Below are positions 5,076-64,000 of a DNA stretch of 64,000 bases, in pieces. Position 1 is the first letter of the stretch. Every line of letters starts with the position of its first letter. Position numbers and translations under genes: made by a program. A model generated the notes under the pieces. It was given only the letters and a program-made list of their open reading frames with translations. It had not been told where the DNA came from and searched no databases. The DNA lies in IMG/VR virus record IMGVR_UViG_3300046787_000200, positions 124,001 to 188,000 of that record. One strand, 5' to 3'.

Positions 5076-5077
5076 TT

Positions 5078-15714: not shown

Positions 15715-16031
15715 TAAGCTTAACAGACAAAGCATCAAACAAGATTCAACAAACAATACAAAAACGAGGCAAAGGCCTAGGCATTCGCATAGGTGTTAAA
15801 ACTACAGGATGCTCAGGTCTTGCCTATGTACTTGAATATGTTGATAACCCACAAGAACATGATATCAAAGTAGATTGCAATGGATGCAATTTATTCATTG
15901 ATCCAAAAAGCTGTGCATATGTTCAAGGCATGACTATTGATTATGTTCGTAACGGACTGAATGAAGGATTTGAATTCAGTAACCCAAATGAACGTGATAG
16001 ATGTGGGTGCGGTGAAAGTTTTAGAATCTAA
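15711..16031 (+). CDS. iscA: A-type Fe-S cluster carrier IscA/HesB
   Basis: KTTGCSGLAY and C-terminal RCGCGESF with the three conserved Cys. Confidence 0.95.
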   Translation: MISLTDKASNKIQQTIQKRGKGLGIRIGVKTTGCSGLAYVLEYVDNPQEHDIKVDCNGCNLFIDPKSCAYVQGMTIDYVRNGLNEGFEFSNPNERDRCGCGESFRI

Positions 16032-17732: not shown

Positions 17733-17745
17733 GTGTCCTTTACTC

Positions 17746-17773
17746 TTTACAATTTTATTAAACAGTATATAAT
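17746..17773 (+). promoter_or_regulatory. Sigma70-type promoter (leaderless geometry)
   Basis: TTTACA-16nt-TATAAT; ATG 6 nt downstream. Confidence 0.65.
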
Positions 17774-17779
17774 ATAGCA

Positions 17780-18466
17780 ATGTATATACCAAACAAATAT
17801 AATTATGTCCCTATGAGCCGTGTAGAGATAGACGGCAAACGCAGATACGCAACACCCGACGGTGAAAAGCTCCCCTCAGTAACAACAATCTTAGACTTTA
17901 CTAAAAGTGAAGAATCTAAGCAAGCATTACAAAATTGGCGTAATCGTGTAGGACATCAGAAAGCAAAAGAGATTACCACTGAAGCCGCAGGTCGTGGAAC
18001 ACGAATGCACAAGTGGATTGAAGATTACATTAAGACAGGAGTAATCAATGAGCCCGGAAGCAATCCGTATAGCATCCAAAGCCATAAAATGGCCAAGACT
18101 ATTATCAGTGAAGGTCTTGTTAACTGTAATGAATACTGGGGTACAGAAGTTCCTCTCTATTATCCGAAGATTTATGCAGGGACGACAGACTTAGTAGGTT
18201 TACATGATGGTGATGAAGCTATCATGGATCATAAGCAAACAAACAAGCCTAAAAAGCGTGAGTGGATTGAAGATTACTTTGTGCAGTTAGCCGCTTATGC
18301 TAATGCTCATAACGAAGTGCATGGTACGAAGATACGTAAGGGCGTAATTTTTATGTGTTCTGCTGATAATATCTATCAGGAATTCATCTTAGAAGGACCT
18401 GAGTTCGTAAAATATACAGATATCTGGTTCAAACGAGTAGAACAATACTACATGCAGTTCTTATAA
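17780..18466 (+). CDS. PD-(D/E)XK exonuclease (MGME1/Cas4-like phage family)
   Basis: LPSVTTIL, RGTRMH, EVPLY, AGTTDLV, IMDHKQ, QLAAYA. Confidence 0.88.
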   Translation: MYIPNKYNYVPMSRVEIDGKRRYATPDGEKLPSVTTILDFTKSEESKQALQNWRNRVGHQKAKEITTEAAGRGTRMHKWIEDYIKTGVINEPGSNPYSIQSHKMAKTIISEGLVNCNEYWGTEVPLYYPKIYAGTTDLVGLHDGDEAIMDHKQTNKPKKREWIEDYFVQLAAYANAHNEVHGTKIRKGVIFMCSADNIYQEFILEGPEFVKYTDIWFKRVEQYYMQFL

Positions 18467-18509
18467 TGGTTTAAGATAAATAAGTGTATATCTTAAAGAT
18501 TTTACACTT

Positions 18510-21071
18510 ATGGCCATTATACAAATTTCGAAAATTCAACAACGCTCAGGTAACTTAGTTGACTTGCCACAGCTTGATGAAGCGCAGTTCGGTTGGGCGA
18601 ATGACGCTAGACGACTTTTTATCGGTACTTCTACTCCCAATCCAATTGAAAATGTTGAAGTATTAACTTCTTATTCAAACATTAGTTTCAGCCAGATTGA
18701 CGGTTCTTACGGAAATCTTAACATTAATATTGCAAATGCCAACGTTGCAGCCAATTCAATTGGTGAAGTACTAGCATTTGATGGTAATAATTGGATCAAT
18801 GCAGGCGCAAATGCAGGAGGCCTGATTAACTTAGGTGACGTAGCTAATGTTAAAATTAATGACGGCGCAGTTGGTTATGTATTAACTACTGACGGTTATG
18901 GTAATCTTTCTTGGACTAGCAAAACAACTGCAATTGCAAACATTATAGACATATCAACTGATAGTCCAGCAGTAATGACATTTGATCCAAATGTTGTTAG
19001 TTATACCAATGGAACTGCAGTTACTATTTTAGGAGTTGAAGGTAATGCTAATAGTGAAATTAATGGTGAAACATTATACTTAAAAGTATCTAATACTTTT
19101 AATACTACCGGTGAAGTAACTCTATACACTGACGATGCATTATCTAACGCATTTAGCGGAGCCAATTTAACTTATACAAATTCTCCAAATGCTACAGCAA
19201 CAAGTGCGTTCGGTATCAATGTTAGTTCTCCCGCATCTGGGGTAGAAGGTTCAATTCAATACAATGTCAGCGGAGTATTGACCGGGTCGGCATCATTAAA
19301 ATTTGCAAATAGTAATGTTGAGATATCTAGCAGTAATGTAGTAGTTACAGGTGGCAATGTATCTGCTAATATTATATCAGGTAATTTACTAACCGGAACA
19401 TTAACAACAGCCGCACAACCTAACATAACAAGCACTGGCACATTAGCTGGATTAGTAGTAGCTGGGCACATAACACCAAGCGCAAATATAACATATAACT
19501 TGGGTAACAACACTAATAGATTTAATGATTTATATTTGGCTAATAGCACTATCTATATAGGTGCACAGACAATTAGTGCTAACTCAACAAATGTAATTGT
19601 ATCAGGCGTTCTAACTGCTAACTTATCCGGCAATGCAACTACAGCAGGTACAGTAACAACAGCCGCACAACCTAACATCACTAGTGTTGGTTCATTAACA
19701 TCACTAAGTGTAGTTGGTAATATAACTACTGGTAATTTAGATGGTGCTAACTCTATTACAGCTAACTATTTTATTGGTAGTGGAAATAATCTAAGTAATA
19801 TTCAGGGTGCAAATATAACAGGTGCAGTAAGTTATGCAACTACTGCTAATAGTGTAGCAGCCGCAAATGTAAGTGGTTTGGGTAACATTGCAACTATTAA
19901 TTTAGATGGTAGTGCAAGTAATATATTATATGGCAATGGCGTATTCGCAGCCGTAGGAGCTACATATAGTAATAGTGATGTAGCAACATTTTTAGCTAGT
20001 TACGGTAGTAATACAATTACAACTACTGGTAACGTAAGTGTTGGTAATATTATAGGTAACGGACAAGCATTGAGTAGTATTGCAGGTGCTAACGTAACAG
20101 GTACTGTTGCAAATGCTACATACGCAACAAGTGCAGGAACTGCAACGTCTGCTACCTCTGCTACTAGCGCATCTAGTGCGACTACTGCAGGCACCGTAAC
20201 AACAGCCGCACAACCAAATATTACAAGTACAGGTACACTTTCAAGTATTTCTGTTTCTGGTAATGCTAATATTGGTAATATAGGCACTGCAGGATTAATT
20301 ACTGCTACTGGTAACTTAAATGCAGGTAATATTATTACCGGTGGAGTTGTTTCTGCAACAGGTAATATTACTGCTGGTCTATTTGTAGGTGATGGTGGTG
20401 GATTAAGTAATATCAATATAGCAGCCGGGTCATCTATCTTAAACGGTAATAGCAATGTATCAGTTAGTGCAAATAGTAATGTAACAATTAGTGTAAGCGG
20501 AACAAGTAATGTTGCTGTTATAACAAACACTGGTATTAACGTTACCGGAACACTAAGTGCTAGTGGTAACATCACTACCGGTAATTTATCAGTTACTACT
20601 GGAACAGTTACATTAGGAGCACTAACAACCGGCGCAAATACTACTGCAGGAACTATTACTGGTAATTGGACATTGACGAGTGGGTCAAAGCTTGAAGCAT
20701 CATACGCTGACTTAGCAGAATATTATGAAGCAGATCAAGCGTATGATCCGGGTACTGTTTTAGCGTTCGGTGGAGAAAAGGAAGTCACCATCGCTGAAGA
20801 CGGCACCACAAGAGTTGCAGGTGTAGTTTCAACTAATCCTGCATATGCAATGAATGCAAATTGTCAAGGTATTGCTATAGCAATTGCATTACAAGGACGT
20901 GTACCTACTAAGGTTCGTGGTAACATACGCAAAGGCGATATGATGGTGTCCGGTGGTAATGGATTCGCTAGACCAAGCTCATCACCGCAGATGGGAACAG
21001 TTATCGGTAAAGCATTAGAAAACTTTGACGGAATCGAAGGCGTAATTGAAATCGCAGTCGGTAGATTATAA
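18510..21071 (+). CDS. Tail fibre/appendage protein with C-terminal peptidase G2-type autocleaving chaperone
   Basis: TTAAQPNITSxG repeats; YADLAEYY...GVVSTNPAY...IALQGRVP...IGKALE domain. Confidence 0.8.
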   Translation: MAIIQISKIQQRSGNLVDLPQLDEAQFGWANDARRLFIGTSTPNPIENVEVLTSYSNISFSQIDGSYGNLNINIANANVAANSIGEVLAFDGNNWINAGANAGGLINLGDVANVKINDGAVGYVLTTDGYGNLSWTSKTTAIANIIDISTDSPAVMTFDPNVVSYTNGTAVTILGVEGNANSEINGETLYLKVSNTFNTTGEVTLYTDDALSNAFSGANLTYTNSPNATATSAFGINVSSPASGVEGSIQYNVSGVLTGSASLKFANSNVEISSSNVVVTGGNVSANIISGNLLTGTLTTAAQPNITSTGTLAGLVVAGHITPSANITYNLGNNTNRFNDLYLANSTIYIGAQTISANSTNVIVSGVLTANLSGNATTAGTVTTAAQPNITSVGSLTSLSVVGNITTGNLDGANSITANYFIGSGNNLSNIQGANITGAVSYATTANSVAAANVSGLGNIATINLDGSASNILYGNGVFAAVGATYSNSDVATFLASYGSNTITTTGNVSVGNIIGNGQALSSIAGANVTGTVANATYATSAGTATSATSATSASSATTAGTVTTAAQPNITSTGTLSSISVSGNANIGNIGTAGLITATGNLNAGNIITGGVVSATGNITAGLFVGDGGGLSNINIAAGSSILNGNSNVSVSANSNVTISVSGTSNVAVITNTGINVTGTLSASGNITTGNLSVTTGTVTLGALTTGANTTAGTITGNWTLTSGSKLEASYADLAEYYEADQAYDPGTVLAFGGEKEVTIAEDGTTRVAGVVSTNPAYAMNANCQGIAIAIALQGRVPTKVRGNIRKGDMMVSGGNGFARPSSSPQMGTVIGKALENFDGIEGVIEIAVGRL

Positions 21072-21372: not shown

Positions 21373-21475
21373 TACCCAAAATTGATAAATACTTAATACA
21401 TTCTCATTCGGAGAATTTATGCAGTAACCCACTGCGTAGCGGCTAGAACCCGCTAATTTTATAAAGGAAAAACAA

Positions 21476-22735
21476 ATGGGACGTCCTCTAAAAATAGCAA
21501 AGGCCCAAGCGGTCTTAACAGTAACTAACACTACTGCAACAACTAACGTTGTAACAGTATCTGAAGATTTATCAACTCTTGGCGTTATTGCCGGCATGCC
21601 ATTCGTACCAAGCGTAACGACAGGTACAAACTTGGTAGCAGGTACAACATATTGGATCTTAGCAGTTTTAAGTACTACAACTTTCACTGTTTCTGCAACT
21701 GATTTAAGTGCTAATACAACACGTACTGCAGTAACATTGACGACAGGTACAACTGCTTCTGCATTGACTGTTGGGTTTGTTGATGCATATTTCAACAACC
21801 CAGAAGGTGGTACTGGTTTCCCAACAACTAACGCTAATACATATGGTGTAGTTGGTGGTAATACAGCAATCTATGGTTCACAAGTTCTACCTCGTGTTGC
21901 TATCGGTGTTAATGGTACAGGTACATTGTATTCTGCTACTGATACTGAATTTGTAACAGGCATTGGTACTGATTTAGCAAACACATTGAGCGTAGGTTCA
22001 GTAATTCAAATCGCTAGTGCAAACGTTAATGGTACAACAACTGATTATACTACTCTAGGTTTTGCTAACACAGTTCCTGGATTAACAACAGTTGCTGTTG
22101 CTAACACACAAAATACAGGTAACATCATTGGTACTTCAGGTAATGCTGAAACATTGATTGCTAACGGTACAGTAAGATTTACTGCTAACTTAGGCGGTCT
22201 AGTTGCTGGTACAGTTTATTTCGTTAAGGCTATCGCAAATGCATCTGCATTCACTGTTTCTACAACATTGGGCGGTGCTGAAGTTGATTTGTCAAGTGCT
22301 ACTGGTACTCCAGACGCACAACAAGATGTAGTTGAATTGACAGCAAATGCGGCAGTGGCTGCATCAGGTTCTTCATTCATCTATGCAGATAATGAAGCAG
22401 GTTTCATCTTACGTCAAAAAGGTAAGCAGAAGTATCTAGTTCAAGGTGGTACAAGTGGTTTGATCGCACAATGCTATACTGCTAACTTGGCTAATACTGC
22501 ATTGACACCAAACACTATGAATATTGTTTCAACTGATGCGGCAACTGATGACACTTATGTTCAGTCATTAAGTGATTACGGTTCATTGACATTCAGTGCT
22601 ACTTCTGGTCCAGTTGCTACAGGTAACATTGTTCTTGCTAACGCTACTCCAGTTGTTGCTTCGTTCAACACTGCATATGCGGCAAATACATATGGTGGAC
22701 AGCCTTACCCAATCGTAACTATTGCTAACGCTTAA
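21476..22735 (+). CDS. Virion structural protein (T/A/G-rich, two copies of a shared beta-module)
   Basis: Late box at 21385, AAAGGA SD; GGLVAGTVYFVK...FTVSTTLGG module. Confidence 0.7.
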   Translation: MGRPLKIAKAQAVLTVTNTTATTNVVTVSEDLSTLGVIAGMPFVPSVTTGTNLVAGTTYWILAVLSTTTFTVSATDLSANTTRTAVTLTTGTTASALTVGFVDAYFNNPEGGTGFPTTNANTYGVVGGNTAIYGSQVLPRVAIGVNGTGTLYSATDTEFVTGIGTDLANTLSVGSVIQIASANVNGTTTDYTTLGFANTVPGLTTVAVANTQNTGNIIGTSGNAETLIANGTVRFTANLGGLVAGTVYFVKAIANASAFTVSTTLGGAEVDLSSATGTPDAQQDVVELTANAAVAASGSSFIYADNEAGFILRQKGKQKYLVQGGTSGLIAQCYTANLANTALTPNTMNIVSTDAATDDTYVQSLSDYGSLTFSATSGPVATGNIVLANATPVVASFNTAYAANTYGGQPYPIVTIANA

Positions 22736-30244: not shown

Positions 30245-33200
30245 ATGGCATTAACCTCACCAGGCGTAGAAGTAACGATTACAGATGAAAGTCAATACTT
30301 ACCAGCCCCAACAAATTCAGTCCCACTAGTTCTATTAGCAACTGCACAAAATAAAGCAAATGCTAGTGGTACAGGTGTAGCAGTGGCAACAACCGCAGCC
30401 AACGCTAATAAATTATATCAAGTAACAAGTCAACGTGATTTAGTAAATTTATATGGTACACCGTTCTTCTACACAACGACCAATGGTACGCCAATTCAAG
30501 GTTACGAATTAAATGAATACGGTTTATTAGCGGCTTATAGCTTGCTAGGTGTTACAAATCGTTGTTATGTATTACGTGCAGATATTGACCTAGCAAGTTT
30601 AGTAGGTCAAACAGGTCGTCCAACTGGTGCACCAACTGACGGTACATACTGGTTAGATAGTACTACTACAACTTGGGGTATCTACGAGTTCAATGCTACT
30701 ACTGGTCAATTCTCATTACAGAATCCTATCGTAATTACTGATGCAGCCGATATGTCAGCCGGATTCCCATTAGCAAGTATTGGTAGTATTGGTGATTATG
30801 CAGTTAACGCAATAGAAGTAACAACCGACGCTACAAATGCTGATAGAACATATTATTATAAGACAACTGACAATGCATGGGCTATCTTAGGTGGTTCAGC
30901 ATGGAAAGCAGATGTTCCTGCAGTAATTTCAAGCTTGTCTAATCCAGACGTTGCCGCTGGCACAATGATTATTAGCTTGTCAGGTTCTGTATCTGTAACA
31001 CTAACTATCGGTGGTAGTGATACAGTAGGTGACGTTGCAACTGCAATTAATGGTTTAGGTTGGGATTATCTAGCAGCCGAAGTTCGTAGTGGTAAATTAT
31101 GTTTATTCACACGCCAACGTTTAACTACAGGTAGTGCGAACGCTTATATTGGTTTGAGTGGTACATCATTGACTTCTATGGGTCTAACTGCAGGTGATTA
31201 TTATACACCAACTGTATCATATGGTACAAGTGCGCAGATGCCATTATGGACAGCAAGTCAAACAACTCCTCGTCCAACAGGATCTGTTTGGATTAAAGTC
31301 GGTGCTGCCGGTACTGGATTAGCTCCAGTAATGTCACAATATAGTACTGCTACAGCATCATGGATATCAAAATCAGTTGCATTAGCAACAAGTGATTGGG
31401 CAGTTACTTCAACATTAGATTCAACAGGCGGTCAAGCTATCCCTGCAGGATCAATATATGGACAATATTATTATAACGGTACTAGCACAACTGCTCCGGT
31501 ATACTTCTGGGAAAGACTAGCTACAGGTGCTACAGTAGTAACAGGTGATAATACAACACCAGATTTCGCATCAGGTCCATATTACATGAACGTATATGTG
31601 TCAGTTCCCGGTAGTTCATCACTAAGTTCTGCATATAATTTCACATTAGCAGGTAGTAGTAATGCTACTGATTTCGTTACCGCATGGTATGCGGCAGGTA
31701 TTCCTTACACGACCGCAGTTGTAACTACAGACGGTGCAATTCAAGTGACTCATACTGAGGGTGGCGAAATTATCATGGACGATACTGTAAATTCATCATT
31801 TGCAGGAACAGGTATTTCTAATGGTCTAATAGTTGAAGCAGGTTTTACATCTGGTACAACTACAGGTGCTAAGTACGGTCCTACTGTAAGTGCTACGTTT
31901 TCAGGTGTTGCGCAAGCAGGAACACAAACAGGAACATCAGGTTCAGGTGCTACATTTAATATAGAATCTATCTATAACATCTACATTCCTGTAGGTGACG
32001 GTGTTCAAGCCGGTGGTAGTGGTTATGCGGTAGGTGATACAATCACAATCGCAGGTACAGTGTTAGGTGGATCATCTCCTGCAAACGATTTAGAAGTTGT
32101 AGTAACTGCAGTATCTGCTGGTGCATTGTCAGCAGTAACATTTGTTTCAGGTGAACCTGAAGCACAGTATAGAACTCAATTAAGTAACTGGGTAGAATTC
32201 ACCTATACTGCTAATGAAGGTGCTCCTAGTGAAGCCCCTGCTAATAATACAAACTGGTTCTATAGTGTTGTTGACCAAGTTGATATTATGGTTCAAAAAG
32301 CTGGTGCCTGGATTGGTTATAAAAACACAGCATATGATTCAACAGGTGCTCCAGTTGCGGCTTCAGGCGCAGGCGCTACAGATCCAAATGGTCCTATAAT
32401 AAGTGCTACTGCACCTACAACTCAAAGTGACGGTACTGCATTGGTATACGGTGACTTGTGGATTGACACAAGCAACTTAGAAGTATATCCAGTAATCAGC
32501 CGTTGGGAAAGCGTTGATGGAGAAAATACATGGGTATTAATTAACAATGCAGACCAGGTAAGTAGCACTGGTGCATTATTTGCCGATGCTCGTTGGGCAA
32601 CAAGTGGTAACGTAAGTCCAGTTGATGATCCTATACCAACTATCGTTAGTTTGCTAACAAGCAACTACTTAGATTTAGATGCTCCTGATCCAAGTCTATA
32701 TCCACAAGGTATGTTGTTGTTTAACACACGCCGTAGTGGTTATAACGTTAAGCAATTCCGTGTTAATTATTTTAACAATACTAACTTCCCAGGTGAAACA
32801 CTGCCTGCACAAACTGATGCATGGGTGACAGTAAGTGGTAATTCTTCTAACGGTGCACCATATATGGGTCGTGCGGCACAACGTGCTATGGTTGTACAAG
32901 CATTGCGTTCAGCAATCGATACAAACACCGACATACGTGATGAAGATAATTACTTCAATTTAATGGCTACACCTAACTATCCAGAACTACAGCCTAACAT
33001 GGTTGTGTTGAATGCAGATCGTGGTGAGACAGGCTATATTATCGGTGATACTCCATTAGGATTAGCTGATAGTGCTACTGACATTCAAGCTTGGGCTAAC
33101 AACGATGCAGGTGCTACAAGCACAGGTGAAACTGGTTTAGTTACACGTAATACTTACTTGGGTCTATTCTATCCAAGCGGAATTACAAATGACTTGTCAG

Positions 33201-33805
33201 GCAATGAAGTTGTTGTTCCAGCATCACATATGATGTTACGCACATTCTTACGTAACGACACAGTGGCTTATCCTTGGTTAGCGGCAGCAGGTACTCGTCG
33301 TGGTAACATTGACAATGCATTGAACATTGGTTACTTAGATCGTCAGACTGGCGAATTCCAAGCAATTAAGACACGTTTAGGAATACGTGATGTATTGTAT
33401 ATTAATCAAATCAATCCATTAGTATTCTTTACTGGTGTTGGTTTGTTGAACTATGGTAACAAAAACAGTTTCAATTCACAAAGCGCATTAGATAGAACTA
33501 ACGTTGCACGTTTAGTTAACTATATCCGTCGTCAATTGACATTGGCAGCAAGACCGTTCGTATTTGAACCTAACGATGCATTAACACGTAATAGTATTGC
33601 AGGCGTAATTCAAACATTGATGGTTGACTTAGTTGCTAAACGTGGTCTCTATGATTATCTTGTAGTTTGTGATGAGTCAAACAACACACCGGCAAGAATT
33701 GATAGAAATGAATTGTGGGTAGACGTTGCAATTGAGCCTGTTAAGGCAGCTGAATTCATCTACATCCCGGTTCGTGTTTTAAACACAGGTGAATTATCAC
33801 AGTAA
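30245..33805 (+). CDS. Contractile tail sheath protein (T4 gp18-like)
   Basis: SPGVEV N-terminus; WLAAAGTRRG, DESNNTPARIDRNELWVDVAIEPVKAAEFI C-terminus. Confidence 0.95.
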   Translation: MALTSPGVEVTITDESQYLPAPTNSVPLVLLATAQNKANASGTGVAVATTAANANKLYQVTSQRDLVNLYGTPFFYTTTNGTPIQGYELNEYGLLAAYSLLGVTNRCYVLRADIDLASLVGQTGRPTGAPTDGTYWLDSTTTTWGIYEFNATTGQFSLQNPIVITDAADMSAGFPLASIGSIGDYAVNAIEVTTDATNADRTYYYKTTDNAWAILGGSAWKADVPAVISSLSNPDVAAGTMIISLSGSVSVTLTIGGSDTVGDVATAINGLGWDYLAAEVRSGKLCLFTRQRLTTGSANAYIGLSGTSLTSMGLTAGDYYTPTVSYGTSAQMPLWTASQTTPRPTGSVWIKVGAAGTGLAPVMSQYSTATASWISKSVALATSDWAVTSTLDSTGGQAIPAGSIYGQYYYNGTSTTAPVYFWERLATGATVVTGDNTTPDFASGPYYMNVYVSVPGSSSLSSAYNFTLAGSSNATDFVTAWYAAGIPYTTAVVTTDGAIQVTHTEGGEIIMDDTVNSSFAGTGISNGLIVEAGFTSGTTTGAKYGPTVSATFSGVAQAGTQTGTSGSGATFNIESIYNIYIPVGDGVQAGGSGYAVGDTITIAGTVLGGSSPANDLEVVVTAVSAGALSAVTFVSGEPEAQYRTQLSNWVEFTYTANEGAPSEAPANNTNWFYSVVDQVDIMVQKAGAWIGYKNTAYDSTGAPVAASGAGATDPNGPIISATAPTTQSDGTALVYGDLWIDTSNLEVYPVISRWESVDGENTWVLINNADQVSSTGALFADARWATSGNVSPVDDPIPTIVSLLTSNYLDLDAPDPSLYPQGMLLFNTRRSGYNVKQFRVNYFNNTNFPGETLPAQTDAWVTVSGNSSNGAPYMGRAAQRAMVVQALRSAIDTNTDIRDEDNYFNLMATPNYPELQPNMVVLNADRGETGYIIGDTPLGLADSATDIQAWANNDAGATSTGETGLVTRNTYLGLFYPSGITNDLSGNEVVVPASHMMLRTFLRNDTVAYPWLAAAGTRRGNIDNALNIGYLDRQTGEFQAIKTRLGIRDVLYINQINPLVFFTGVGLLNYGNKNSFNSQSALDRTNVARLVNYIRRQLTLAARPFVFEPNDALTRNSIAGVIQTLMVDLVAKRGLYDYLVVCDESNNTPARIDRNELWVDVAIEPVKAAEFIYIPVRVLNTGELSQ

Positions 33806-54875: not shown

Positions 54876-55676
54876 ATGGACCATTATCAAACATTGGGTG
54901 TAGCTAAAAATGCTACTCCCGATGACATCAAAAAAGCATATCGCAAACTAGCAAGCAAACATCACCCAGATAAAGGTGGTGATACCGCTACATTTCAAAA
55001 GATCGAAGAAGCTTATCGCATTCTTAGTGATCCGAATCAACGACAGCAATATGATAACCCTATGCCACAAGGATTCCCCGGTGGTGCAGGACCTCATGGC
55101 TTCCATTTCAATATGAACGGAATGGATCTAAATGATATATTTGCACAAGTATTCAATCAACGAGGACAAACACACCAACGTCAACCACAAACGTTTAGAA
55201 CGCAGGTAGTAGTAACACTAGACCAAGCATATAACGGTGGCTCACAAAATCTAAAACTACAAACACATAATGGCACTCATGCTATTAATATTCAAATACC
55301 CAAAGGTGTTGCAGATGGCAACCAAATGCGTTTTGAAAATGTAATACCCGGTGCTGGATTGTTAGTTGAATTTCGTGTGCAAAATCATTTAAAATATGAA
55401 AGACGTGGCAATGATTTATATTGTAATTACCCAGTTTCTGTATTAGATTTAATTGTAGGTACTGAAATTGAATTCACAACACTTTCGGGTAAAACATTAA
55501 TGGTAAAAATACCACCCAGAACACAACCGCATATGCATCTGAAAATAGCAGGAGAAGGCATGCCAATATTAAATTCCTCACTATACGGAGACCAAATAAT
55601 ATTGATTAAACCCATAATACCTGATATAATTGACTCTGAAATAACTGATAGCATTATGCGTTCCAAATCTAAGTAA
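54876..55676 (+). CDS. dnaJ: Class B J-domain protein (DnaJ/CbpA-like, no Zn finger)
   Basis: YQTLGV...IKKAYRKLASKHHPDK (HPD), G/F region, C-terminal substrate domains. Confidence 0.93.
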   Translation: MDHYQTLGVAKNATPDDIKKAYRKLASKHHPDKGGDTATFQKIEEAYRILSDPNQRQQYDNPMPQGFPGGAGPHGFHFNMNGMDLNDIFAQVFNQRGQTHQRQPQTFRTQVVVTLDQAYNGGSQNLKLQTHNGTHAINIQIPKGVADGNQMRFENVIPGAGLLVEFRVQNHLKYERRGNDLYCNYPVSVLDLIVGTEIEFTTLSGKTLMVKIPPRTQPHMHLKIAGEGMPILNSSLYGDQIILIKPIIPDIIDSEITDSIMRSKSK

Positions 55677-55699
55677 ATAATTTTAAAGGAAATAACACT

Positions 55700-57976
55700 T
55701 TGACTAATTCACCCGAAATCGAAAATATCATTGAACAAGCAATTGCTTTTGCTAAAGAGCGAAAGCATGAATATTGCACCGTAGAACACTTGCTATTAGC
55801 ATTAGTTACTCACACCCCATTTAAGAAATGCTTAGATAGTTTTGGTGCTGATTCTGATATGCTTATCCAAGAAGTAGGAGCATATTTAGATGGACAACAT
55901 TCAATAGAACTTAAAGGCGTGACTAGTGAAGAAGTTCACCCACGCAAAACAAATAGCCTTGAACGATTAATGAATCGTTCAGTTACACAAGTATTGTTTA
56001 CTGGTCGTAGACAAGTTACTACAATTGACTTGTATCTAAGTATGGCAAGTGAGGGCAATAGTCATGCACATTACTTCTTGTTGAAATACGGTATCAATAA
56101 ACAAGAGTTCGTGGCTCATTGGCAGAAAACTTATAAAGGTGCTGAGTTCACTACAAAACTAAGTGATGGTCAAGCAGACGAAATCCTCGAAGAATATACG
56201 ACTAACTTAAGCGACCTAGCACGTAAAGGTAAGATTGAACCATTGATCGGTCGTAGTAAAGAACTTGATGAAATCGTTAATGTACTTGCTAAACGATTCA
56301 AAGCTAACGTGTTGATGGTAGGTGATCCTGGCGTAGGTAAAACGGCTATTGCTGAAGGTCTTGCTAATATGATTGCTATGGGTGATTGCCCAGAGTTTAT
56401 TCTTAACCACGAAGTATATTCACTTGAAGTAGGTGCATTGCTTGCTGGTAGTAAATATCGCGGTGACTTTGAAGAAAAAGTCAAACAAGTATTAGAAGCA
56501 CTTAATACTAAAAAGAAAGCTATTCTATTCATTGACGAAGCACATACTATGAGTGGCGCAGGCTCTGGCAATGCAGGAGGTCCTGACTTTGCAAACATGA
56601 TTAAGCCAGCAATTACTAAAGGTACATTGAAAGTTATTGCTTCAACTACTTGGGAAGAATACTACGAAAGTTTTGAGAAGGATCGTGCATTGATGCGTAG
56701 ATTCTATCGTGTATCTATTGATGAACCTACTAAAGATACGACTATTAGTATTCTTACTGGACTAAGCACACGATTGAACGACTTCCATGAAGTAGAGATT
56801 CTACCTGAAGCAGTTACTGCCGCAGTGGAAAGTGCTGGACGATATATTCATGACCGTAAGAATCCTGATAAGAGTATTGACTTGCTTGATGCGGCTTGTG
56901 CCCGTCAGAAAGTTGATGGTAATAAAGGTGCTCAGATTACTAAAGATATGATTTTTCAACAAGTTGAACGCTTTACAGGTGTCCCTGCTGATAAACTTAG
57001 CGGTGATAACATGGATCGTATTCAAACACTTGAAGTTAATGTCAAGGGTAAATTGTATGGTCAAGATGAAACAGTTGATAAAGTACTTGAACGTATCTAT
57101 GTCAGTTTTGCAGGTATCGGTAGTGAAAGTAAACCAACTGCAAGTTTCTTGTTCTTGGGCCCAACAGGTACAGGTAAAACAGAATTGGCTAAGTTGTTGA
57201 GTAAGAACCTTGACATGCCATTGCTCAAATATGATATGTCAGAGTATGGTGAGAAACACTCTGTATCAAGTTTGATCGGTCCGCCCCCTGGCTATGTTGG
57301 TTTCGGTGACAGTCAAGTAAGTGGTGGACGACTAATTAATGACTTGAGCAAGAACCCACATAGTATCTTGTTGTTTGACGAAGTTGAGAAAGCACACCCT
57401 GATATCTTTAACATTTTCTTACAGATGCTTGATGAAGGTCGTATCACTGGATCTAATGGTAAAGAAGTTAACTGTAAGAACTGTGTTATCATCTTAACAA
57501 GTAACTTGGGTAGTAGTGATAGTGAACGCAATAACATTGGCTTTGGCTCACAAGAGAAGACAGGTGAAGATGATAAAGCACTAAAAGAATTCTTCAAGCC
57601 TGAATTCAGGAATCGTTTAGATTTAGTATGTAAGTTTAATAAGCTTGATATGCTTGCGATTAAGAAGATTGTTGTTAAGTTTGCAGAACAGTTGAAAGAT
57701 ACATTGTTGGATAAACACAACATTACATTGAACTTGAGTGAACCAGTAGTTGAGTATTTGGCTGAACAGGGTTATGATAAGAAGATGGGTGCTCGACCAC
57801 TAGCTCGTAAGATTGATGAGTTGATTCGTGTTCCGTTATCTAAGAAGATTCTGTTTGAACGTATTAAGAACTCAATTATTACTGCGGTAATTAATGATGA
57901 AGGTTCTATTGAATACAATGTTGTGCAAAAATCAACAGCAAGAGTAGGTGAAGATGGCATTATTGAGATCAGTTAA
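55700..57976 (+). CDS. clpA: ClpA-type Hsp100 AAA+ unfoldase
   Basis: Single Clp-N domain (TVEHLLLAL), two NBDs (GDPGVGKT, GPTGTGKT), IGF loop, GARPL, no ClpB middle domain. Confidence 0.9.
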   Translation: MTNSPEIENIIEQAIAFAKERKHEYCTVEHLLLALVTHTPFKKCLDSFGADSDMLIQEVGAYLDGQHSIELKGVTSEEVHPRKTNSLERLMNRSVTQVLFTGRRQVTTIDLYLSMASEGNSHAHYFLLKYGINKQEFVAHWQKTYKGAEFTTKLSDGQADEILEEYTTNLSDLARKGKIEPLIGRSKELDEIVNVLAKRFKANVLMVGDPGVGKTAIAEGLANMIAMGDCPEFILNHEVYSLEVGALLAGSKYRGDFEEKVKQVLEALNTKKKAILFIDEAHTMSGAGSGNAGGPDFANMIKPAITKGTLKVIASTTWEEYYESFEKDRALMRRFYRVSIDEPTKDTTISILTGLSTRLNDFHEVEILPEAVTAAVESAGRYIHDRKNPDKSIDLLDAACARQKVDGNKGAQITKDMIFQQVERFTGVPADKLSGDNMDRIQTLEVNVKGKLYGQDETVDKVLERIYVSFAGIGSESKPTASFLFLGPTGTGKTELAKLLSKNLDMPLLKYDMSEYGEKHSVSSLIGPPPGYVGFGDSQVSGGRLINDLSKNPHSILLFDEVEKAHPDIFNIFLQMLDEGRITGSNGKEVNCKNCVIILTSNLGSSDSERNNIGFGSQEKTGEDDKALKEFFKPEFRNRLDLVCKFNKLDMLAIKKIVVKFAEQLKDTLLDKHNITLNLSEPVVEYLAEQGYDKKMGARPLARKIDELIRVPLSKKILFERIKNSIITAVINDEGSIEYNVVQKSTARVGEDGIIEIS

Positions 57977-59248: not shown

Positions 59249-61393
59249 ATGAGACAAATAGTCATTATGCCGGGAGGCTTTCATCCTTTTCACGCAGGTC
59301 ATGCATCATTGTATCAAAGTGCAGTAAAAGCATTTCCCAATGCAGAAGTATATGTCGCCGCTACTAATGACACAAAAACAAGACCGTTCCCCTTCGCTAT
59401 TAAAGAGAAATTAGCAAAGCTTGCAGGTGTTGCAGATAAACACTTTGTGCAAGTTAAGAGTCCTTTCCAGGCAAGAGAGATAACTGACAAATACAACCCT
59501 GAAGAAGATGTATTAATCTTTGTTCGTAGTGAGAAAGATAAGACTGAACAACCTAAACCAGGTGGCACTAAAAAAGATGGTAGTCCTGCTTACTTCCAAC
59601 CATATACAGGTAAGAATTTACAGCCATTCAGCAAACACGCATATATTGCATATCTACCTACAGTAGAGTTTGGTCCTGGCATTACAAGTGCAACAGAAAT
59701 ACGTAATGCATGGCCTAAGTTAGATGACCGTCGTAAGACAGCAATGGTTATGAGTTTATATCCAGTAACACAAAAGAATCCTAAACTTGCCGCTAACGTT
59801 GTAAAGATGTTAGATATGGGTATGGGTGAACAGCAAGGTCTGGCGGAAATGGATTCACAAGGTTATACAGGTAGCCGTGATAAGAAAAGTAATAGCAAGT
59901 ACGGTAGCCGCGATGACTATGAGTTAGGTAAAGGTAAAGAACATACCGGCAAGGCTATCACGGCCAATAATATGGTTAAAGCAGCCAAGAAAGTCTGGGA
60001 CTATGCTACTGAACCAGTAGATGCTCCTAACATAGAAACCTATAAGAAACATCGTGCTAAAAATATTGCTAACATTCGCAAGAACAAAGATCAAGGTGTG
60101 AAGGAAGGCTCACTAAACGAATTTGCTCCAGACGGATTCAACGGTGGCGATGACGATGAAGGGTTTAGTCCAGAGATTGCGAAGATGGCACAAGAAGATG
60201 GCTTTACTAAAGGTGCCGGCCTTGCTGATGGTGCTACATTAGAACGAGCAATGGCAATCAATCACTGGCACAGCACACACGGTGGTATGTATAAACAATA
60301 CTTTGCCAAAGGCTTTAAAGCAGGTCGTATGGATAAAATCCGTCACAATAATAAACAATACAATCTCAACTTGAAGTTGATGAAAGACGGTAGTATCCGT
60401 CACGGTGAGCAAGGTGTGGCGGAAGGCGAAGTTGTTCCCTTCAAGCAACCATCAAAAACATTAACTTGGGAACAAGTACCTAAAGATGTTTTATTGGTAG
60501 CTAATGATTGGTTCTGGGCAAGTGAAGATAATTCAGGACTTGACGCTACTATAGATCCTGAAGGTTATGGTAATGGTACTGCCAATGATGTAAAGTATTT
60601 GTCAGCTAAACTACAACAAAAAGGTTGGACAATCGATTTCAATGATGAATACGATCAACCAGGTGAGTTCAATCTAAGACTTACTAACAAACGTGGTCAA
60701 ACTGTATTGTTGCCCATTGAGGATGCACAAAACTTTACTGGTTGGGCAAAGGGAACAAGTTCGTATGATTTAGAAGAAGGTGCAAGCTTATCAGTAGAAC
60801 AACTTGCACATATCAGTGATAAAGCATTAGATGATGCTTATCATTATGGTCGTAGCACACCCGGCGCAAACTTTGGTTGGTTAGCAAACATTCAATCAGC
60901 AAAAGCCGCAAAACGTTTAATTGATGCCGGTGTAACTGATATTGAAGCTATTAGTGATGCTATTCACAAAGGTTGGAATGTCACAGCCGCCGCCGACTAT
61001 AAAGGTCAACTACAGTTAGATACACCTACTCCGGAAGATAAGAAATTAAAACGTGCTAAGTTAGCAATGCAATCTTACAGTCAACTTCCAGAAGAAGAAA
61101 AAGAGAAGGATCGTGTTGTGGCACGTGCTTTATTGCAAGCTATTAAAGGTACTTCTTTAAATGAAGGCCCTTTCGTCCAGCGAATCACTAATCCAAAGAA
61201 AGTTAGTATCTACCTAAGAATAGGTAAAGGGTCTAAACTTGTTGCTACTGATATACCTTATGAAATATTAGATAAGTATGTTGCCAAAGTTATCCAGAAA
61301 TACCCACAGTTTAAGCCAACTGATTTCTCGTTTGCGTCAACTGATAAAGTAGACGAAGCTGAAACTAATCAGGATTACTTAGAAGAAAATTAA
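59249..61393 (+). CDS. HxGH (cytidylyltransferase-like) nucleotidyltransferase with C-terminal cassette tail
   Basis: PGGFHPFHAGH, SATEIR; then modules separated by QGLAE, QGVKE, QGVAE, LEE, LNE. Confidence 0.8.
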   Translation: MRQIVIMPGGFHPFHAGHASLYQSAVKAFPNAEVYVAATNDTKTRPFPFAIKEKLAKLAGVADKHFVQVKSPFQAREITDKYNPEEDVLIFVRSEKDKTEQPKPGGTKKDGSPAYFQPYTGKNLQPFSKHAYIAYLPTVEFGPGITSATEIRNAWPKLDDRRKTAMVMSLYPVTQKNPKLAANVVKMLDMGMGEQQGLAEMDSQGYTGSRDKKSNSKYGSRDDYELGKGKEHTGKAITANNMVKAAKKVWDYATEPVDAPNIETYKKHRAKNIANIRKNKDQGVKEGSLNEFAPDGFNGGDDDEGFSPEIAKMAQEDGFTKGAGLADGATLERAMAINHWHSTHGGMYKQYFAKGFKAGRMDKIRHNNKQYNLNLKLMKDGSIRHGEQGVAEGEVVPFKQPSKTLTWEQVPKDVLLVANDWFWASEDNSGLDATIDPEGYGNGTANDVKYLSAKLQQKGWTIDFNDEYDQPGEFNLRLTNKRGQTVLLPIEDAQNFTGWAKGTSSYDLEEGASLSVEQLAHISDKALDDAYHYGRSTPGANFGWLANIQSAKAAKRLIDAGVTDIEAISDAIHKGWNVTAAADYKGQLQLDTPTPEDKKLKRAKLAMQSYSQLPEEEKEKDRVVARALLQAIKGTSLNEGPFVQRITNPKKVSIYLRIGKGSKLVATDIPYEILDKYVAKVIQKYPQFKPTDFSFASTDKVDEAETNQDYLEEN

Positions 61394-61449: not shown

Positions 61450-62355
61450 ATGGCAACTAAGAAAACAAAATCAGAAGCAAAAACAGTACCTGTAGAAAAG
61501 GTACAAGAAATCGCCGCTCAAGCAGCCGCAAATCCACCAGAAGCTACGGCTGCTGGTCAAGTACAAGTTAATGTAGATTTCTTACGCACAACACGTGTAC
61601 ACATAGCAATGCCATGTTATGGTGGTATGCTAACAGAATCAACATTTATGTCATTTATCAAGTGGGCTAACACTGCCCGTCAACTTGGTATTGATTGGAC
61701 ATTAGAAACAATGGTCAACGAATCATTGATTAGTCGTGCTCGTAACACACTAACTGCTAAGTTCCTAGATATGCCAGACGCAACACACTTATTCTTTGTT
61801 GACGCTGACATTGGTTGGGAGCCATGGCACTTGTTAGTATTATTGAACCGTGACGTTGATGTTGCGGCAGGTCTATATCCTATGAAGACAATGCCGATCA
61901 AATGGGTTGTTAACGGATTTGAAGGTGCAGAAGAAGGACCAGATGGTCTACAAGAAGTATCTAAAGCAGGTACAGGTTTCTTGTTAATGAAGAAACACGT
62001 ATTTGAAAAGATGAAGTCTCATCCTGCAGTTAAGCAGTATAAGAACGATATCGGTTTAGATCCAAAGTACGACCAACACTTGAAGACTTACTTTGATACA
62101 GCAGTTCGTCAGAATCGTTACTACAGTGAAGACTGGACATTCTGTGAAAACTGGCGTGATATGGGTGGTAAGATTTGGGTTGACAAACGTGTATTGTTAC
62201 GTCACTCAGGCTCTTATGTATTCTGTATGGAAAATCAACAACACTTGATGAATACAATTGGACCTATGTATGTTCAGGAACAGCAACAAAAAGCGGCTGC
62301 AGAACAGCAAGTTGTCCCGGATGCATCAGGCAACGTAACACTAAAAATCTCTTAA
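61450..62355 (+). CDS. GT-A fold glycosyltransferase
   Basis: IAMPCY, LISRARN, LFFVDADI (DxD), GTGFLLM, SEDWTFC, H. Confidence 0.82.
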   Translation: MATKKTKSEAKTVPVEKVQEIAAQAAANPPEATAAGQVQVNVDFLRTTRVHIAMPCYGGMLTESTFMSFIKWANTARQLGIDWTLETMVNESLISRARNTLTAKFLDMPDATHLFFVDADIGWEPWHLLVLLNRDVDVAAGLYPMKTMPIKWVVNGFEGAEEGPDGLQEVSKAGTGFLLMKKHVFEKMKSHPAVKQYKNDIGLDPKYDQHLKTYFDTAVRQNRYYSEDWTFCENWRDMGGKIWVDKRVLLRHSGSYVFCMENQQHLMNTIGPMYVQEQQQKAAAEQQVVPDASGNVTLKIS

Positions 62356-62410: not shown

Positions 62411-64000
62411 ATGGACTTAAAAGAATTAGACTCGTTTAAAATGTCGGATGCGATAACATTCCACGATAAACTTAATCCAAAGTTATTTCGTGGCACTCAC
62501 CTACAATCTGATGTATCAGATCAATTAAAAGTTATAGCACAAGATTTCTTAGAAGAATTAGGAATTAAAGGTTTAGATGTTAAAGACATAACTATATCCG
62601 GATCTAATGCGGCATATAGTTATACACCTAACAGCGATTTAGACTTACACATATTAGTTGATTTAAGTCAGTATCCAGACGATGAGATATACCAAGAGTT
62701 ATTTCACGCTAAAAAGACAATATACAATGATTCACACAATATCAAAGTTCACGGAATTCCAGTAGAATTATATGTGCAAGATAGCAACGAACCTGTAATA
62801 AGTTTAGGTGAGTATAGTATATTAAAAGACAAGTGGCTTAGAATTCCTACTAAACGTAGAAGTAATTTAGACCAAACTGCTACTAAACAGAAATACGAAA
62901 AGTTATTGAAGCTAGCAGAATATGCGTTAAAGTCAAAGAAATTAAGTAAAGTAAAACAAATATTACAAACTATCAAACGTTATCGTCAAGCTGGACTAGA
63001 TAAAGGTGGAGAGTTTGGTCCTGAGAATCTAGCATTCAAGGCATTACGTAGTCAAGGTATTATTACTAAATTGTATGATTTGCGTGACAAATTACATAGT
63101 CAACATTTGAGTATTGAGAGTATGTATTCTAATGATGTTGATGAAGATTATCATCCAAATGGTAAGCCACCTGGACCTGAGTTTAAACCCACAATGCCAG
63201 CCGGCACTGTTAGAGTAGATGTATCAGATGTATATGATTGGTATAAGTTAGGTCAAAACATCAGTGACCTTGGTAGAGCAGATCCTAATATGTTTGGTAA
63301 AGGACCTCCTAGCACTATTATGTCATTTGGGGACGAAGATACTGAACACAAATATATCAATGACTTAGAGAAGACTGGATTAACTACAACTGACATTGAC
63401 CCAGTTGATCCTAAGCAACCTAAAGGTATGAAGCGTCAGAAGACTGACCCTACTTACAATGTGTCGGAACAAGAAACAATGCAATATGCTGCCGAAAAGA
63501 TACCGGCAACTAATCCATATGGTGGTCTTAAAGATAGACAGTATCGTGGTAGTATATCAGAAATAAGAAAAAATCCAGAACAAAATCTTAAGTCAGAATC
63601 TGGTATGAAAGAATTAGCAAGTATTGCTAAGACTATTAGTGATCCAGAAAACTGGGCTATCAGTATGACCAGTGAACCCAAGTTAGGTATCAACCCACAA
63701 GTAGGTATTAGCGAAGACACCCCTAAAGGCATTTACTTCTATCCATTGAACTATGCATTAGGTAAGACACGCTATGGAAAATTGCCTTGGGGAAATGACT
63801 ATCCCTATATTCAGTTGTTTCAATATGATCGTTCACGTGAAATGACTAAACAAACAAAAGTTGACCCTGCTAAATTAAAACAAGCATTGCTTCAATATTG
63901 TCCTGAAGAAGTAATACAGCAAGCAATTGACGATCCAGAATACGACGGAACACCATACTGGTTCATTTACGATTGTTTAAGCAGACTAGGACAAAACGAC
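62411..64000 (+). CDS. Pol-beta-superfamily nucleotidyltransferase with C-terminal cassettes (3' partial, absent from the ORF track)
   Basis: My translation: MDLKEL...ISGSNAAYSYTPNSDLDLHI...VELYVQD; frame open to the window end. Confidence 0.8.
   Translation, partial: MDLKELDSFKMSDAITFHDKLNPKLFRGTHLQSDVSDQLKVIAQDFLEELGIKGLDVKDITISGSNAAYSYTPNSDLDLHILVDLSQYPDDEIYQELFHAKKTIYNDSHNIKVHGIPVELYVQDSNEPVISLGEYSILKDKWLRIPTKRRSNLDQTATKQKYEKLLKLAEYALKSKKLSKVKQILQTIKRYRQAGLDKGGEFGPENLAFKALRSQGIITKLYDLRDKLHSQHLSIESMYSNDVDEDYHPNGKPPGPEFKPTMPAGTVRVDVSDVYDWYKLGQNISDLGRADPNMFGKGPPSTIMSFGDEDTEHKYINDLEKTGLTTTDIDPVDPKQPKGMKRQKTDPTYNVSEQETMQYAAEKIPATNPYGGLKDRQYRGSISEIRKNPEQNLKSESGMKELASIAKTISDPENWAISMTSEPKLGINPQVGISEDTPKGIYFYPLNYALGKTRYGKLPWGNDYPYIQLFQYDRSREMTKQTKVDPAKLKQALLQYCPEEVIQQAIDDPEYDGTPYWFIYDCLSRLGQND

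Follow-up and report, generated by a model that had tools for sequence, protein, structure and literature searches.

Interchangeable in-frame cassettes joined by a short conserved motif resembling a T4-type head-protease site in a gene of an uncultured giant phage

A gene of an uncultured giant phage was found to be built from a fixed, predicted enzyme domain followed by interchangeable protein cassettes, which are joined by a short motif (Q-G-V-A-E|G) that is conserved even at silent DNA positions, resembles the site cut by the T4-type head protease and recurs in well over a hundred other viral contigs. The gene lies in a 64-kb stretch of IMG/VR record IMGVR_UViG_3300046787_000200 (positions 124,001 to 188,000, hereafter the window). 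An earlier note on the sequence alone had described an HxGH domain followed by five unrelated modules, three junctions sharing DNA written in GC-rich codons untypical of the gene, a fourth site in the neighbouring NTase, and further boundaries of the LEE-G and LNE-G type. This observation was confirmed, with all coordinates exact, and extends far beyond this gene. The note further proposed that the shared DNA is a recombination point that also encodes a maturation cleavage site, with captured domains riding on a head-packaged carrier in an integron-like manner; this interpretation was supported only in part, as detailed below.

The gene (59249-61393, + strand) is an uninterrupted frame of 714 aa, termed P0001, comprising a NadD-like HxGH domain, five cassettes of 64-129 aa and an 11-aa tail. 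The conserved N-terminal domain (59249-59848, aa 1-200) ends in MGMGEQQGLAE and matches the cytidylyltransferase-like/HxGH nucleotidyltransferase family PF01467 at residues 6-94 (E=3e-6; 25.1-27.8 bits against a cut-off of 21), whereas TIGR00125 is borderline (27.6 against 27.7). The motif GGFHPFHAGH at residues 9-18 is invariant in an alignment of the family and a later ISxTxxR-type motif, GITSATEIR, was read directly at residues 144-152. In the AF2 model, pLDDT is mostly 72-91 over residues 1-190, dropping to about 50 at 101-130. The nearest PDB folds are NadD NaMN/NMN adenylyltransferases, but at a marginal E=7e-4 and a TM of about 0.5, and the NCBIfam NadD and NadR models score far below their cut-offs.

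Junction 1 (59834-59851, +) is CAAGGTCTGGCGGAAATG, encoding Q-G-L-A-E|M, and leads into cassette M1 (59849-60106, +; aa 201-286), which has no family hit and low pLDDT, although a 37%-identical copy sits inside an unrelated ORF of L152 (labels of this kind denote loci from other viral contigs). Junction 2 (60092-60109, +), CAAGGTGTGAAGGAAGGC, encodes Q-G-V-K-E|G and precedes cassette M2 (60107-60424, +; aa 287-392). A 71%-identical copy of M2 is found in an unrelated ORF of L110, and the corresponding DNA alignment starts at gene nt 838, six nt before junction 2, and ends at nt 1177, which is the next junction. Junction 3 (60410-60427, +), CAAGGTGTGGCGGAAGGC, encodes the consensus form Q-G-V-A-E|G and precedes cassette M3 (60425-60778, +; aa 393-510), which shows a confidently predicted fold over residues 401-493. 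Copies of M3 sit in L115, L061 and L093 under other N-termini, with DNA alignments running from nt 1155-1169 to nt 1530-1533. Junctions 4 (60770-60781, +; TTAGAAGAAGGT, L-E-E|G) and 5 (61157-61168, +; TTAAATGAAGGC, L-N-E|G) lie in low-pLDDT segments (residues 494-512 and 636-646, respectively); junction 4 keeps the peptide pattern without the DNA motif. Between them lies cassette M4 (60779-61165, +; aa 511-639; pLDDT 74-91), which is weakly RyR-like (PF02026 at E=0.008, below the gathering score) and whose copies in L145 and L108 are followed by QQGVAEG. Pfam and PDB sequence searches gave no other indication of cassette function. Cassette M5 (61166-61357, +; aa 640-703) has a confidently predicted alpha/beta fold over residues 647-700 and ends in K-V-D-E|A. 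The gene closes with the conserved tail AETNQDYLEEN and the stop codon (61358-61393, +), for which the family consensus is [VLI]-x-E|S-x-D-Y-L-x-E-K; this tail is present on most orthologues and on five ORFs with other N-termini, and Y710 and E713 are invariant in the family alignment. No peptidase family was found in P0001.

The pattern CAAGGTNTGNNGGAA has three matches in the window, all inside this ORF and always at cassette boundaries, against a chance expectation of 0.01, and none of 100 shuffles reached three. In P0001, [VLIM]-x-E-[GAS] occurs five times (286, 392, 510, 639 and 703), always at a boundary and never inside a module, in addition to GLAE|M at junction 1. A second carrier, a Pol-beta-type NTase gene (62411-64000, +), is cut off by the window end; its full 736-aa version is found in L001 (9163-11373). 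It matches phrog_36119 (E=6e-41) and, weakly, PF01909, and its N-domain (1-240) and C-module (681-735) are conserved whereas the middle is variable. The fourth site, GTGTCGGAA (63461-63469, +; V-S-E), lies at a cassette boundary of this NTase, with seven tblastn alignments ending exactly at residue 353 (N-V-S-E|Q). Just past the window end, the same 352-kb contig encodes a 503-aa protein with the leader MKISQIIQE and five such junctions.

The boundaries are genuine homology breakpoints. More than 1,781 homologues of 393-1204 aa were found and 57 viral loci carry versions of 215-1191 aa; overall, more than 1,700 homologues keep the N-domain at 50-99% identity but range from 215 to 1204 aa. BLASTP alignment ends against 154 homologues pile up on P0001 at residues 195-201, 387-390, 504-511 and 633-640, with ends also at residue 703, and DNA alignment ends fall at nt 838, 1155-1177, 1523-1533, 1901-1914 and 2103-2121 of the gene, coinciding with junctions to within a few nt. 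Of internal BLASTP alignment ends, 28-37% lie within 3 aa of an h-x-E|[GAS] site, against 3.6% for random positions, that is 8-10 times more often than chance. Among pairs with at least 97% identical N-domains, 37% share under 60% of their C-parts, and pairs at 99% N-domain identity can share only 38-40%. Sites of this type were also depleted inside the N-domain (1 observed against 53 expected), although this is not independent evidence, as the N-domains are one conserved family. Cutting at junctions followed by single-linkage clustering gave 56 cassette clusters, a number made unreliable by one merged cluster of 252 segments.

The junction DNA is conserved at silent positions, and the earlier note's remark on codon usage holds. 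At junctions, Val is GTG in 8 of 9 cases (gene background 14%) and Ala is GCG in 11 of 17 (background 6%), and the same bias holds at 148 further junctions that were not selected by DNA sequence. In an unbiased 731-kb sample, 14 of 20 distinct GVAEG sites use GGTGTGGCGGAAGG[CT] (GGT GTG GCG GAA GG[CT]) and 19 of 20 use GCG, against a background of at most 25% for GTG and 6-11% for GCG, whereas 803 kb of control loci contain only two GVAEG peptides, both written GTT GCT. A silent-site test restricted to one orthologous junction yielded only 4 distinct instances, too few to use. The exact 17-mer of junction 3, the consensus form, occurs in more than 120 viral-contig stretches, with 161 of 162 copies in the same reading frame, none in an intergenic region and a median open frame of 563 codons, in proteins with many unrelated N- and C-termini, in some of which P0001 cassettes M1-M4 recur. 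Degenerate junctions (LEE|G, LNE|G, VTE|G and others) keep the peptide pattern without the DNA motif, so the peptide is selected in its own right.

A link to head maturation is inferred from several lines of comparison. T4 gp21 cuts after IAE of the capsid-targeting sequence (CTS) MKTYQEFIAE (PMC8442874) and at ITE-6 and LTE-619 of Alt (PMC5694885), and the junction peptide has the same h-x-E form. In total, 36% of junction-bearing ORFs start with CTS-like leaders (MRAQEFITE|G, MRATEFIIE|G, MKINEIISE|Q) against 11% of other ORFs (odds ratio 4.7, p=2e-8). P0001 itself has no such leader, as it starts MRQIVIMPGGFHP, which forms the first strand of the enzyme fold. Three related contigs (L087, L071 and L107) carry portal, gp21-family (S77) protease, scaffold and capsid genes followed by a QGVAEG polyprotein; PF03420 was matched at E=3e-26 in L087, whose S77 protease gene lies at 4794-5417, and tblastn with the PA5oct protease also matches L071 at 54% identity. 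The capsid protein there has a conserved A-L-L-E|G site, and 68 distinct capsid-protein N-termini of that clade carry a conserved L-x-E|G site (63 of them LLE|G), most with an earlier L-L-E|S/G site, while the scaffold protein carries 15 h-x-E|[GAS] sites. The Q-G prefix of the junction is, however, not shared by the capsid or scaffold sites. One 374-kb contig holds both a PA5oct-type capsid gene and a QGVAEG ORF (L218 and L140).

Other observations weigh against this link. The gene lies among replication and chaperone genes (clamp loader, DnaJ, ClpA) and not in a head module. A tblastn search with the PA5oct portal, protease, scaffold and capsid proteins found none of these genes in the window, and a capsid-protein alignment scan returned 80 loci, none from the window's contig. 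The 14-nt core is absent from 78 other PA5oct-type head-module loci totalling 803 kb and from the 64 kb of PA5oct that was sampled; the motif is therefore not a general feature of that clade, and a general association with PA5oct-type head modules was rejected. The T4-type late promoter pattern TATAAATA occurs 4 times against 11.8 expected and never near the gene.

No tRNAs were found in the window. Among GenBank phages, megablast of the gene gave nothing, tblastn of the whole protein matched only the first ~160 residues at 27-28% identity, and tblastn of the cassette part against 50,697 phage records gave no match; there is no cultured relative. A literature search found no publication of the motif in phages, and a 2026 review of jumbo phages does not mention such polyproteins.

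Together, it is suggested, with a probability of roughly 0.5, that the gene belongs to a very large, fast-changing family of carrier-plus-cassette proteins in uncultured jumbo myophages distantly related to PA5oct and the T4-like phages, a freshwater origin being suggested only by an Rfam freshwater-2 RNA hit in the window. In this view, the conserved NadD-like nucleotidyltransferase domain and a conserved 8-11 residue C-terminal tail frame a variable string of zero to at least eight unrelated cassettes, whose boundaries take the form hydrophobic-x-Glu|Gly/Ala/Ser, most commonly Q-G-V-A-E|G written in almost invariant DNA (CAA GGT GTG GCG GAA GGC) with codons rare in these genomes. At the DNA level, the junction would be a short patch of identity at which ordinary phage recombination inserts, deletes and exchanges cassettes in frame, within a gene, between genes and between phages, and cassettes whose flanks match the consensus would spread more easily, keeping the silent positions conserved. 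At the protein level, it would be a cleavage site for the S77 prohead protease, the polyprotein being cut into separate domains inside the maturing head and delivered with the DNA, as T4 internal proteins and Alt are. The analysis itself demonstrates the coincidence of breakpoints with junctions, the fast turnover, the sharing of cassettes between carriers and the silent-site conservation. The recombination mechanism is inferred, as are cleavage and packaging into virions, which in the absence of proteomic or biochemical evidence rest on motif identity, the CTS-like leaders of family members and gene position in related contigs. Silent-site conservation could also have an unidentified nucleic-acid-level cause.

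A bolder and more tentative reading is that the cassettes are semi-autonomous, in-frame mobile units shared across a whole guild of uncultured jumbo phages, each flanked by an approximately 17-bp repeat serving both as recombination address and as coding sequence of a capsid-protease site, so that any captured domain would automatically be loaded, cut free and injected. This would be a protein-level cassette system for rapid turnover of ejected proteins, probably anti-defence or host-takeover factors, in which the C-terminal tag ([VLI]xE|SxDYLxEK) may serve as a second, removable loading signal. If the main reading is correct, it shows how giant phages diversify the proteins they inject, drawing on a shared pool of small domains that can be plugged into any carrier at a standard joint guaranteeing both in-frame insertion and later release by the capsid protease. 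The 17-mer, or the peptide Q-G-V-A-E-G, could then be used to retrieve likely ejected proteins, most of which currently lack annotation, from metagenomes. It would also be a clear example of selection keeping silent positions constant because of recombination rather than coding, and suggests a natural design for loading several foreign proteins into T4-like capsids.

Among alternative explanations, the best surviving, although unlikely, is that the protein works uncut as one multidomain 'polyvalent' protein, the junction being only a flexible linker that doubles as a recombination handle. The junctions at residues 510, 639 and 703 lie in low-pLDDT, probably flexible linkers between confidently predicted domains, polyvalent proteins are common in phages and some are packaged unprocessed (PMC5512222), and P0001 has no N-terminal leader. 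However, a plain linker needs neither an invariant Glu followed by a small residue nor a hydrophobic residue two positions before it, a pattern which is kept where the DNA motif is lost, equals that in the capsid and scaffold proteins next to an S77 protease, and accompanies an enrichment of CTS-like leaders in the family. It is improbable that the element is primarily a nucleic-acid signal, such as a Chi-like hotspot, the target of a homing or nicking endonuclease or an mRNA signal, with the peptide as a by-product. The silent-site conservation, the mostly NTG codons of the V/L/M variants at P3 and a GIY-YIG-like ORF between the capsid gene and the polyprotein in L087 speak for it, whereas the single reading frame of 161 of 162 copies inside long ORFs, the many h-x-E|G junctions with ordinary codons and the lack of a conserved flanking structure or linked enzyme speak against it; it can, however, coexist with the main reading. 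Equally improbable is cleavage in the cytoplasm by a different phage or host protease, as for eukaryotic RNA-virus polyproteins, without entry into the capsid. The gene does lie outside any head module, next to ClpA-like and DnaJ genes, and some homologues carry a zincin HExxH cassette (for example the homologue P0039, with PF01435 and PF10463), but ClpA is an unfoldase without sequence-specific cutting, most family members have no peptidase cassette, the site pattern matches gp21-type specificity, and CTS-like leaders and a position next to the capsid gene are seen in relatives. An internal translation start or ribosome pause giving nested proteins is very unlikely: although AAGGUG resembles a Shine-Dalgarno core, the P3 codon is usually GTG, ATG or TTG and junction 1 is followed by ATG, there is no spacer between the SD-like bases and NTG, no start codon lies 5-9 nt downstream in the consensus, GTG dominates over ATG, and degenerate junctions lack any SD-like sequence.

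The arrangement can be compared with several known systems. As in integrons, unrelated cassettes accumulate in an array at a repeated short site, but integrons need an integrase and palindromic attC sites and their cassettes are separate genes, whereas here the cassettes are in-frame protein segments, the site is not palindromic, and a search for a linked recombinase, which the earlier note had named as a check, found no integrase or other dedicated recombinase among the called genes within 10 kb on either side. The integron analogy is therefore not supported in a mechanistic sense, and general homologous recombination on a short patch of identity is enough to explain the pattern. In polymorphic toxin systems (CdiA VENN, Rhs PxxxxDPxGL), a conserved N-terminal part and a variable C-terminal part are demarcated by a short conserved peptide whose DNA serves as a recombination point, and in Rhs the motif is also a cleavage site. 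Those systems are bacterial, with one variable tip per protein and an adjacent immunity gene, whereas here, in a phage, several chained cassettes are followed by a conserved tail, and no immunity gene is evident, the downstream gene encoding a conserved 301-aa protein. In T4-type phages, PeSL cassettes and gp38 glycine-rich motifs (PMC2839356, PMC3157838) similarly involve short conserved motifs that flank variable segments and are preferred sites of recombinational shuffling, the 'linker' idea of modular phage evolution. PeSLs are, however, intergenic promoter-terminator units that move whole genes, and the gp38 motifs form a structural core within one domain, whereas here the linker is in frame between independent domains and also reads as a protease site. 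The inner-body and ejection proteins of phiKZ and SPN3US are jumbo-phage head proteins cut at several short x-E motifs by a gp21-related protease, with N-terminal propeptides shared between paralogues, but their motif is S/A/G-x-E rather than hydrophobic-x-E, cleavage removes propeptides rather than separating strings of unrelated cassettes, and no junction-centred cassette exchange is described.

Polyvalent proteins of phages and conjugative elements (Iyer et al. 2017, PMC5512222) likewise combine 2-15 unrelated domains, frequently including NTases, in one polypeptide with mosaic, fast-changing architectures, are predicted to be delivered with the DNA, and have their domains released by peptidases, as in RNA-virus polyproteins. 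P0001 shares the mosaic of unrelated domains, but polyvalent proteins usually carry their own zincin or other peptidase domain and no universal, DNA-conserved junction motif is described for them, whereas most members of the present family have no peptidase cassette and their joints match the capsid-maturation protease. In T4, a diverse set of cargo proteins, the internal proteins IPI-III and Alt, is loaded through a short shared leader ending in h-x-E, where gp21 cuts, Alt being trimmed at both ends; many QGVAEG proteins start with near-identical leaders, although the window protein does not, and related contigs encode an S77 protease. T4 cargo proteins are single units cut once or twice, whereas here several unrelated cassettes are chained in one frame with a putative site at every joint, and the joint is conserved in DNA.

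The finding lies in a single uninterrupted ORF on the forward strand of the window (59249-61393, +), encoding a protein of 714 aa, P0001. The earlier note had reported three related DNA strings within this gene (59834, 60092 and 60410) and a fourth (63461) in the next large gene, and this observation held, all four being located exactly at these positions. The pattern CAAGGTNTGNNGGAA occurs three times in the 64-kb window, always within this ORF, against 0.01 expected from shuffles. Residues 6-94 match PF01467 and include the HxGH motif, while the AlphaFold model gives a confident predicted N-domain (residues 1-194) whose nearest solved folds are NadD adenylyltransferases, although only marginally. 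A search of 50,697 GenBank phage records returned no relative of the gene beyond a 27-28% match to the N-domain.

The window belongs to a 352-kb viral contig, in which the finding is surrounded by replication, tail and chaperone genes. The latter include a phage-encoded DnaJ homologue followed by a full-length ClpA-like AAA+ unfoldase (TIGR02639, E=4e-233; 54876-57976, +), three genes upstream of the ORF. The tail sheath (30245-33805, +) is about 44% identical to that of PA5oct and 47% to that of Atu_ph07, and is unusually long at 1186 aa; only residues ~640-1182 match sheath families, leaving about 640 N-terminal residues as an unexplained extension or insertion. An Rfam 'freshwater-2' cis-regulatory RNA at 21400-21478 (+), scoring 71 bits against a gathering score of 49.9, hints at a freshwater origin and lies directly in front of a Thr/Ala/Gly-rich ORF of 419 aa (21476-22735) for which no family hit was obtained. 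At the start of the window (5-4471, +), about 17 tandem, end-overlapping small ORFs of 62-95 aa, nearly all ending in [FL]-x-L-[RK]-W-x, form a paralogous small-protein array in a stretch with high GC skew.

A protein search with P0001 returned more than 1,781 homologues, of which the best 120 are typically 80-94% identical, but only over about 27% of the query. Their lengths run from 393 to 1204 aa, and 57 viral loci carry versions of 215-1191 aa. One contig of 524,565 bp (IMGVR_UViG_3300027749_002876) holds two paralogous copies of the carrier gene with different cassette sets, of 389 and 491 aa. Alignment ends on P0001 pile up at residues 195-201, 387-390, 504-511, 633-640 and 703, which defines an N-domain (residues 1-200), five cassettes, M1 (201-286), M2 (287-392), M3 (393-510), M4 (511-639) and M5 (640-703), and a tail (704-714). 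DNA alignments break at the same places to within a few bases. Across 155 distinct family members, 28-37% of internal alignment ends lie within 3 residues of a [VLIM]-x-E|[GAS] site, whereas random positions give 3.6%. Turnover is much faster than point change, since 37% of the pairs whose N-domains are at least 97% identical share under 60% of their C-parts, and some 99%-identical pairs share only 38-40%. Cassettes M1-M4 also occur in ORFs with quite different N-termini, and in one homologue of 822 aa (P0039) a cassette is a zincin-type metallopeptidase (HEIGH; PF01435 and PF10463) next to a TonB_2-like segment, showing that peptidase cassettes occur in the pool. The neighbouring Pol-beta-type NTase (window 62411 onward; 736 aa in the related locus L001) follows the same plan, with a conserved N-domain and C-module and a variable middle, and its alignment ends fall at NVSE|Q, which is the fourth site of the earlier note, at SISE|I and at KVNE|A. 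Between the two carriers lies a protein of 301 aa (61450-62355, +), syntenic in the relatives, which contains an FFVDADIGW (DxD-like) stretch and may be a glycosyltransferase, although Pfam and NCBIfam searches gave no hit. Just beyond the window end, the same contig encodes two more cassette polyproteins (positions 15424-16935 and 16937-19951 of the stretch L260), one of 503 aa with the leader MKISQIIQE, which resembles a capsid targeting sequence (CTS), and five G-[VM]-[AE]-E|G joints, the other of 1004 aa with Cys-rich cassettes and one QGVAE|G.

Read across homologues, the joints are N-E-L-A-E|G, Q-G-V-A-E|G, Q-G-L-A-E|G, Q-G-M-T-E|G, L-E-E|G, V-T-E|G, V-V-E|G, I-K-E|G and similar, the constant part being a hydrophobic residue, any residue and Glu, followed by a small residue. 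This pattern occurs five times in P0001, always at a boundary, and in the C-parts of the family it is 2.6 times more frequent than in shuffled sequences, whereas the reversed pattern is not enriched. In the structure model, the joints at residues 510, 639 and 703 lie in low-confidence linkers between confident domains, while M1 and M2 are poorly modelled throughout.

The earlier note had suspected that the junction is conserved at the nucleotide level, and codon usage showed this to be correct: the DNA, and not only the peptide, is conserved. In the family's genes GTG makes up 14% of Val codons and GCG 6% of Ala codons, whereas at junctions GTG accounts for 8 of 9 and GCG for 11 of 17. At 148 further junctions with distinct contexts, none of them picked by DNA sequence, Val is GTG 82 times against 27 for the other three codons, Ala is GCG 74 times with GCA next at 13, and the preceding Gly is GGT 120 times out of 147. 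An unbiased sample comprising the window and 58 loci fetched through the N-domain (731 kb) contains 20 distinct GVAEG peptides, of which 14 are written GGTGTGGCGGAAGG[CT] and 19 use GCG; 803 kb of control loci contain two GVAEG peptides, both GTT GCT. Silent variants do exist (GCA, GTA, TTA), and the picture is one of copies continually renewed from a consensus and then decaying, rather than of an absolutely fixed site. The motif also appears to be a clade-wide feature, as a scan of IMG/VR for the exact 17-mer CAAGGTGTGGCGGAAGG recovered at least 120 stretches, many with 2-4 copies spaced 150-700 bp apart. Of 162 copies, 161 are in the frame Q-G-V-A-E-G inside long ORFs, and the 125 ORFs have many unrelated N- and C-termini. 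No paper mentioning the motif in a phage context was found in the library searched, and a 2026 review of jumbo phages does not describe such polyproteins.

In T4, the internal proteins are diverse anti-defence proteins that share only a capsid targeting sequence, MKTYQEFIAE, after which gp21 cuts (PMC3012670, PMC8442874); Alt is trimmed at ITE-6 and LTE-619, and the phiKZ-like protease uses S/A/G-x-E (PMC5694885). Among the QGVAEG ORFs, 47 of 78 distinct N-termini look like the T4 leader (MRAQEFITE|G, MRATEFIIE|G, MRAHEFIVE, MKINEIISE and MKTLRDYINLIESAEQGVAE|G), and with a stricter pattern 36% match, against 11% of other long ORFs in the same loci (p=2e-8). Three motif-bearing contigs (L071, L087 and L107) carry a T4-like head module, in which the capsid protein is 65-66% identical to that of PA5oct and the protease matches PF03420 (Peptidase_S77) at E=3e-26. 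The gene right after the capsid gene is a QGVAEG polyprotein with variable cassettes, although in L087 a GIY-YIG-like homing-endonuclease ORF (7870-8592) is inserted between the two. The 68 distinct capsid-protein N-termini of that clade broadly follow M-S-x-x-L-L-E|S/G-R-W-x-E-T-K-x-A-L-L-E|G-L, and the scaffold protein carries 15 h-x-E|[GAS] sites, where h is a hydrophobic residue. One 374-kb contig has both this capsid type and a QGVAEG ORF (stretches L218 and L140). Together, these observations make a gp21-type cut at the joints the most economical reading, but they do not prove it. Caution is warranted because P0001 lacks the N-terminal leader, the head genes of its own contig were not found, the motif is absent from 78 other head-module loci of the PA5oct type, and no expression-timing signal was found. 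A link to head maturation is inferred.

The interpretation offered in the earlier note, of a short DNA site acting as a recombination point that also encodes a maturation cleavage site, was supported in part. The comparisons demonstrate that cassettes are exchanged at the joints, that the joints are conserved in DNA and that cassettes are shared among carriers and phages, whereas the mechanism and the fate of the protein are inferences. It is inferred that exchange happens by general homologous recombination on the patch of about 15-18 bp, no recombinase lying within 10 kb on either side, and that cassettes with consensus flanks transfer more readily, which would maintain the silent positions. 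In this view, the polyprotein would be loaded into proheads and cut at each joint by the S77 protease, releasing the N-terminal enzyme and each cassette. The conserved tail that ends the carrier family (61358-61393 in the window), [VLI]-x-E|S-x-D-Y-L-x-E-K, is itself preceded by an h-x-E site and is shared with five ORFs with unrelated N-termini (in loci L063, L068, L076, L099 and L173), and might be a removable C-terminal loading signal. The finding is well supported as an observation and as a recombination junction, and moderately supported as a cleavage-and-delivery system.

The integron analogy drawn in the earlier note is not supported in any mechanistic sense. As interpreted here, the system would work like T4 internal proteins and Alt, and like Aravind's polyvalent proteins, and it evolves like the shuffling mediated by PeSL or gp38 motifs and like polymorphic-toxin tips. 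It differs from these known systems in combining the in-frame chaining of several unrelated cassettes, a joint conserved at silent positions, and the identity of that joint with a capsid-protease motif.
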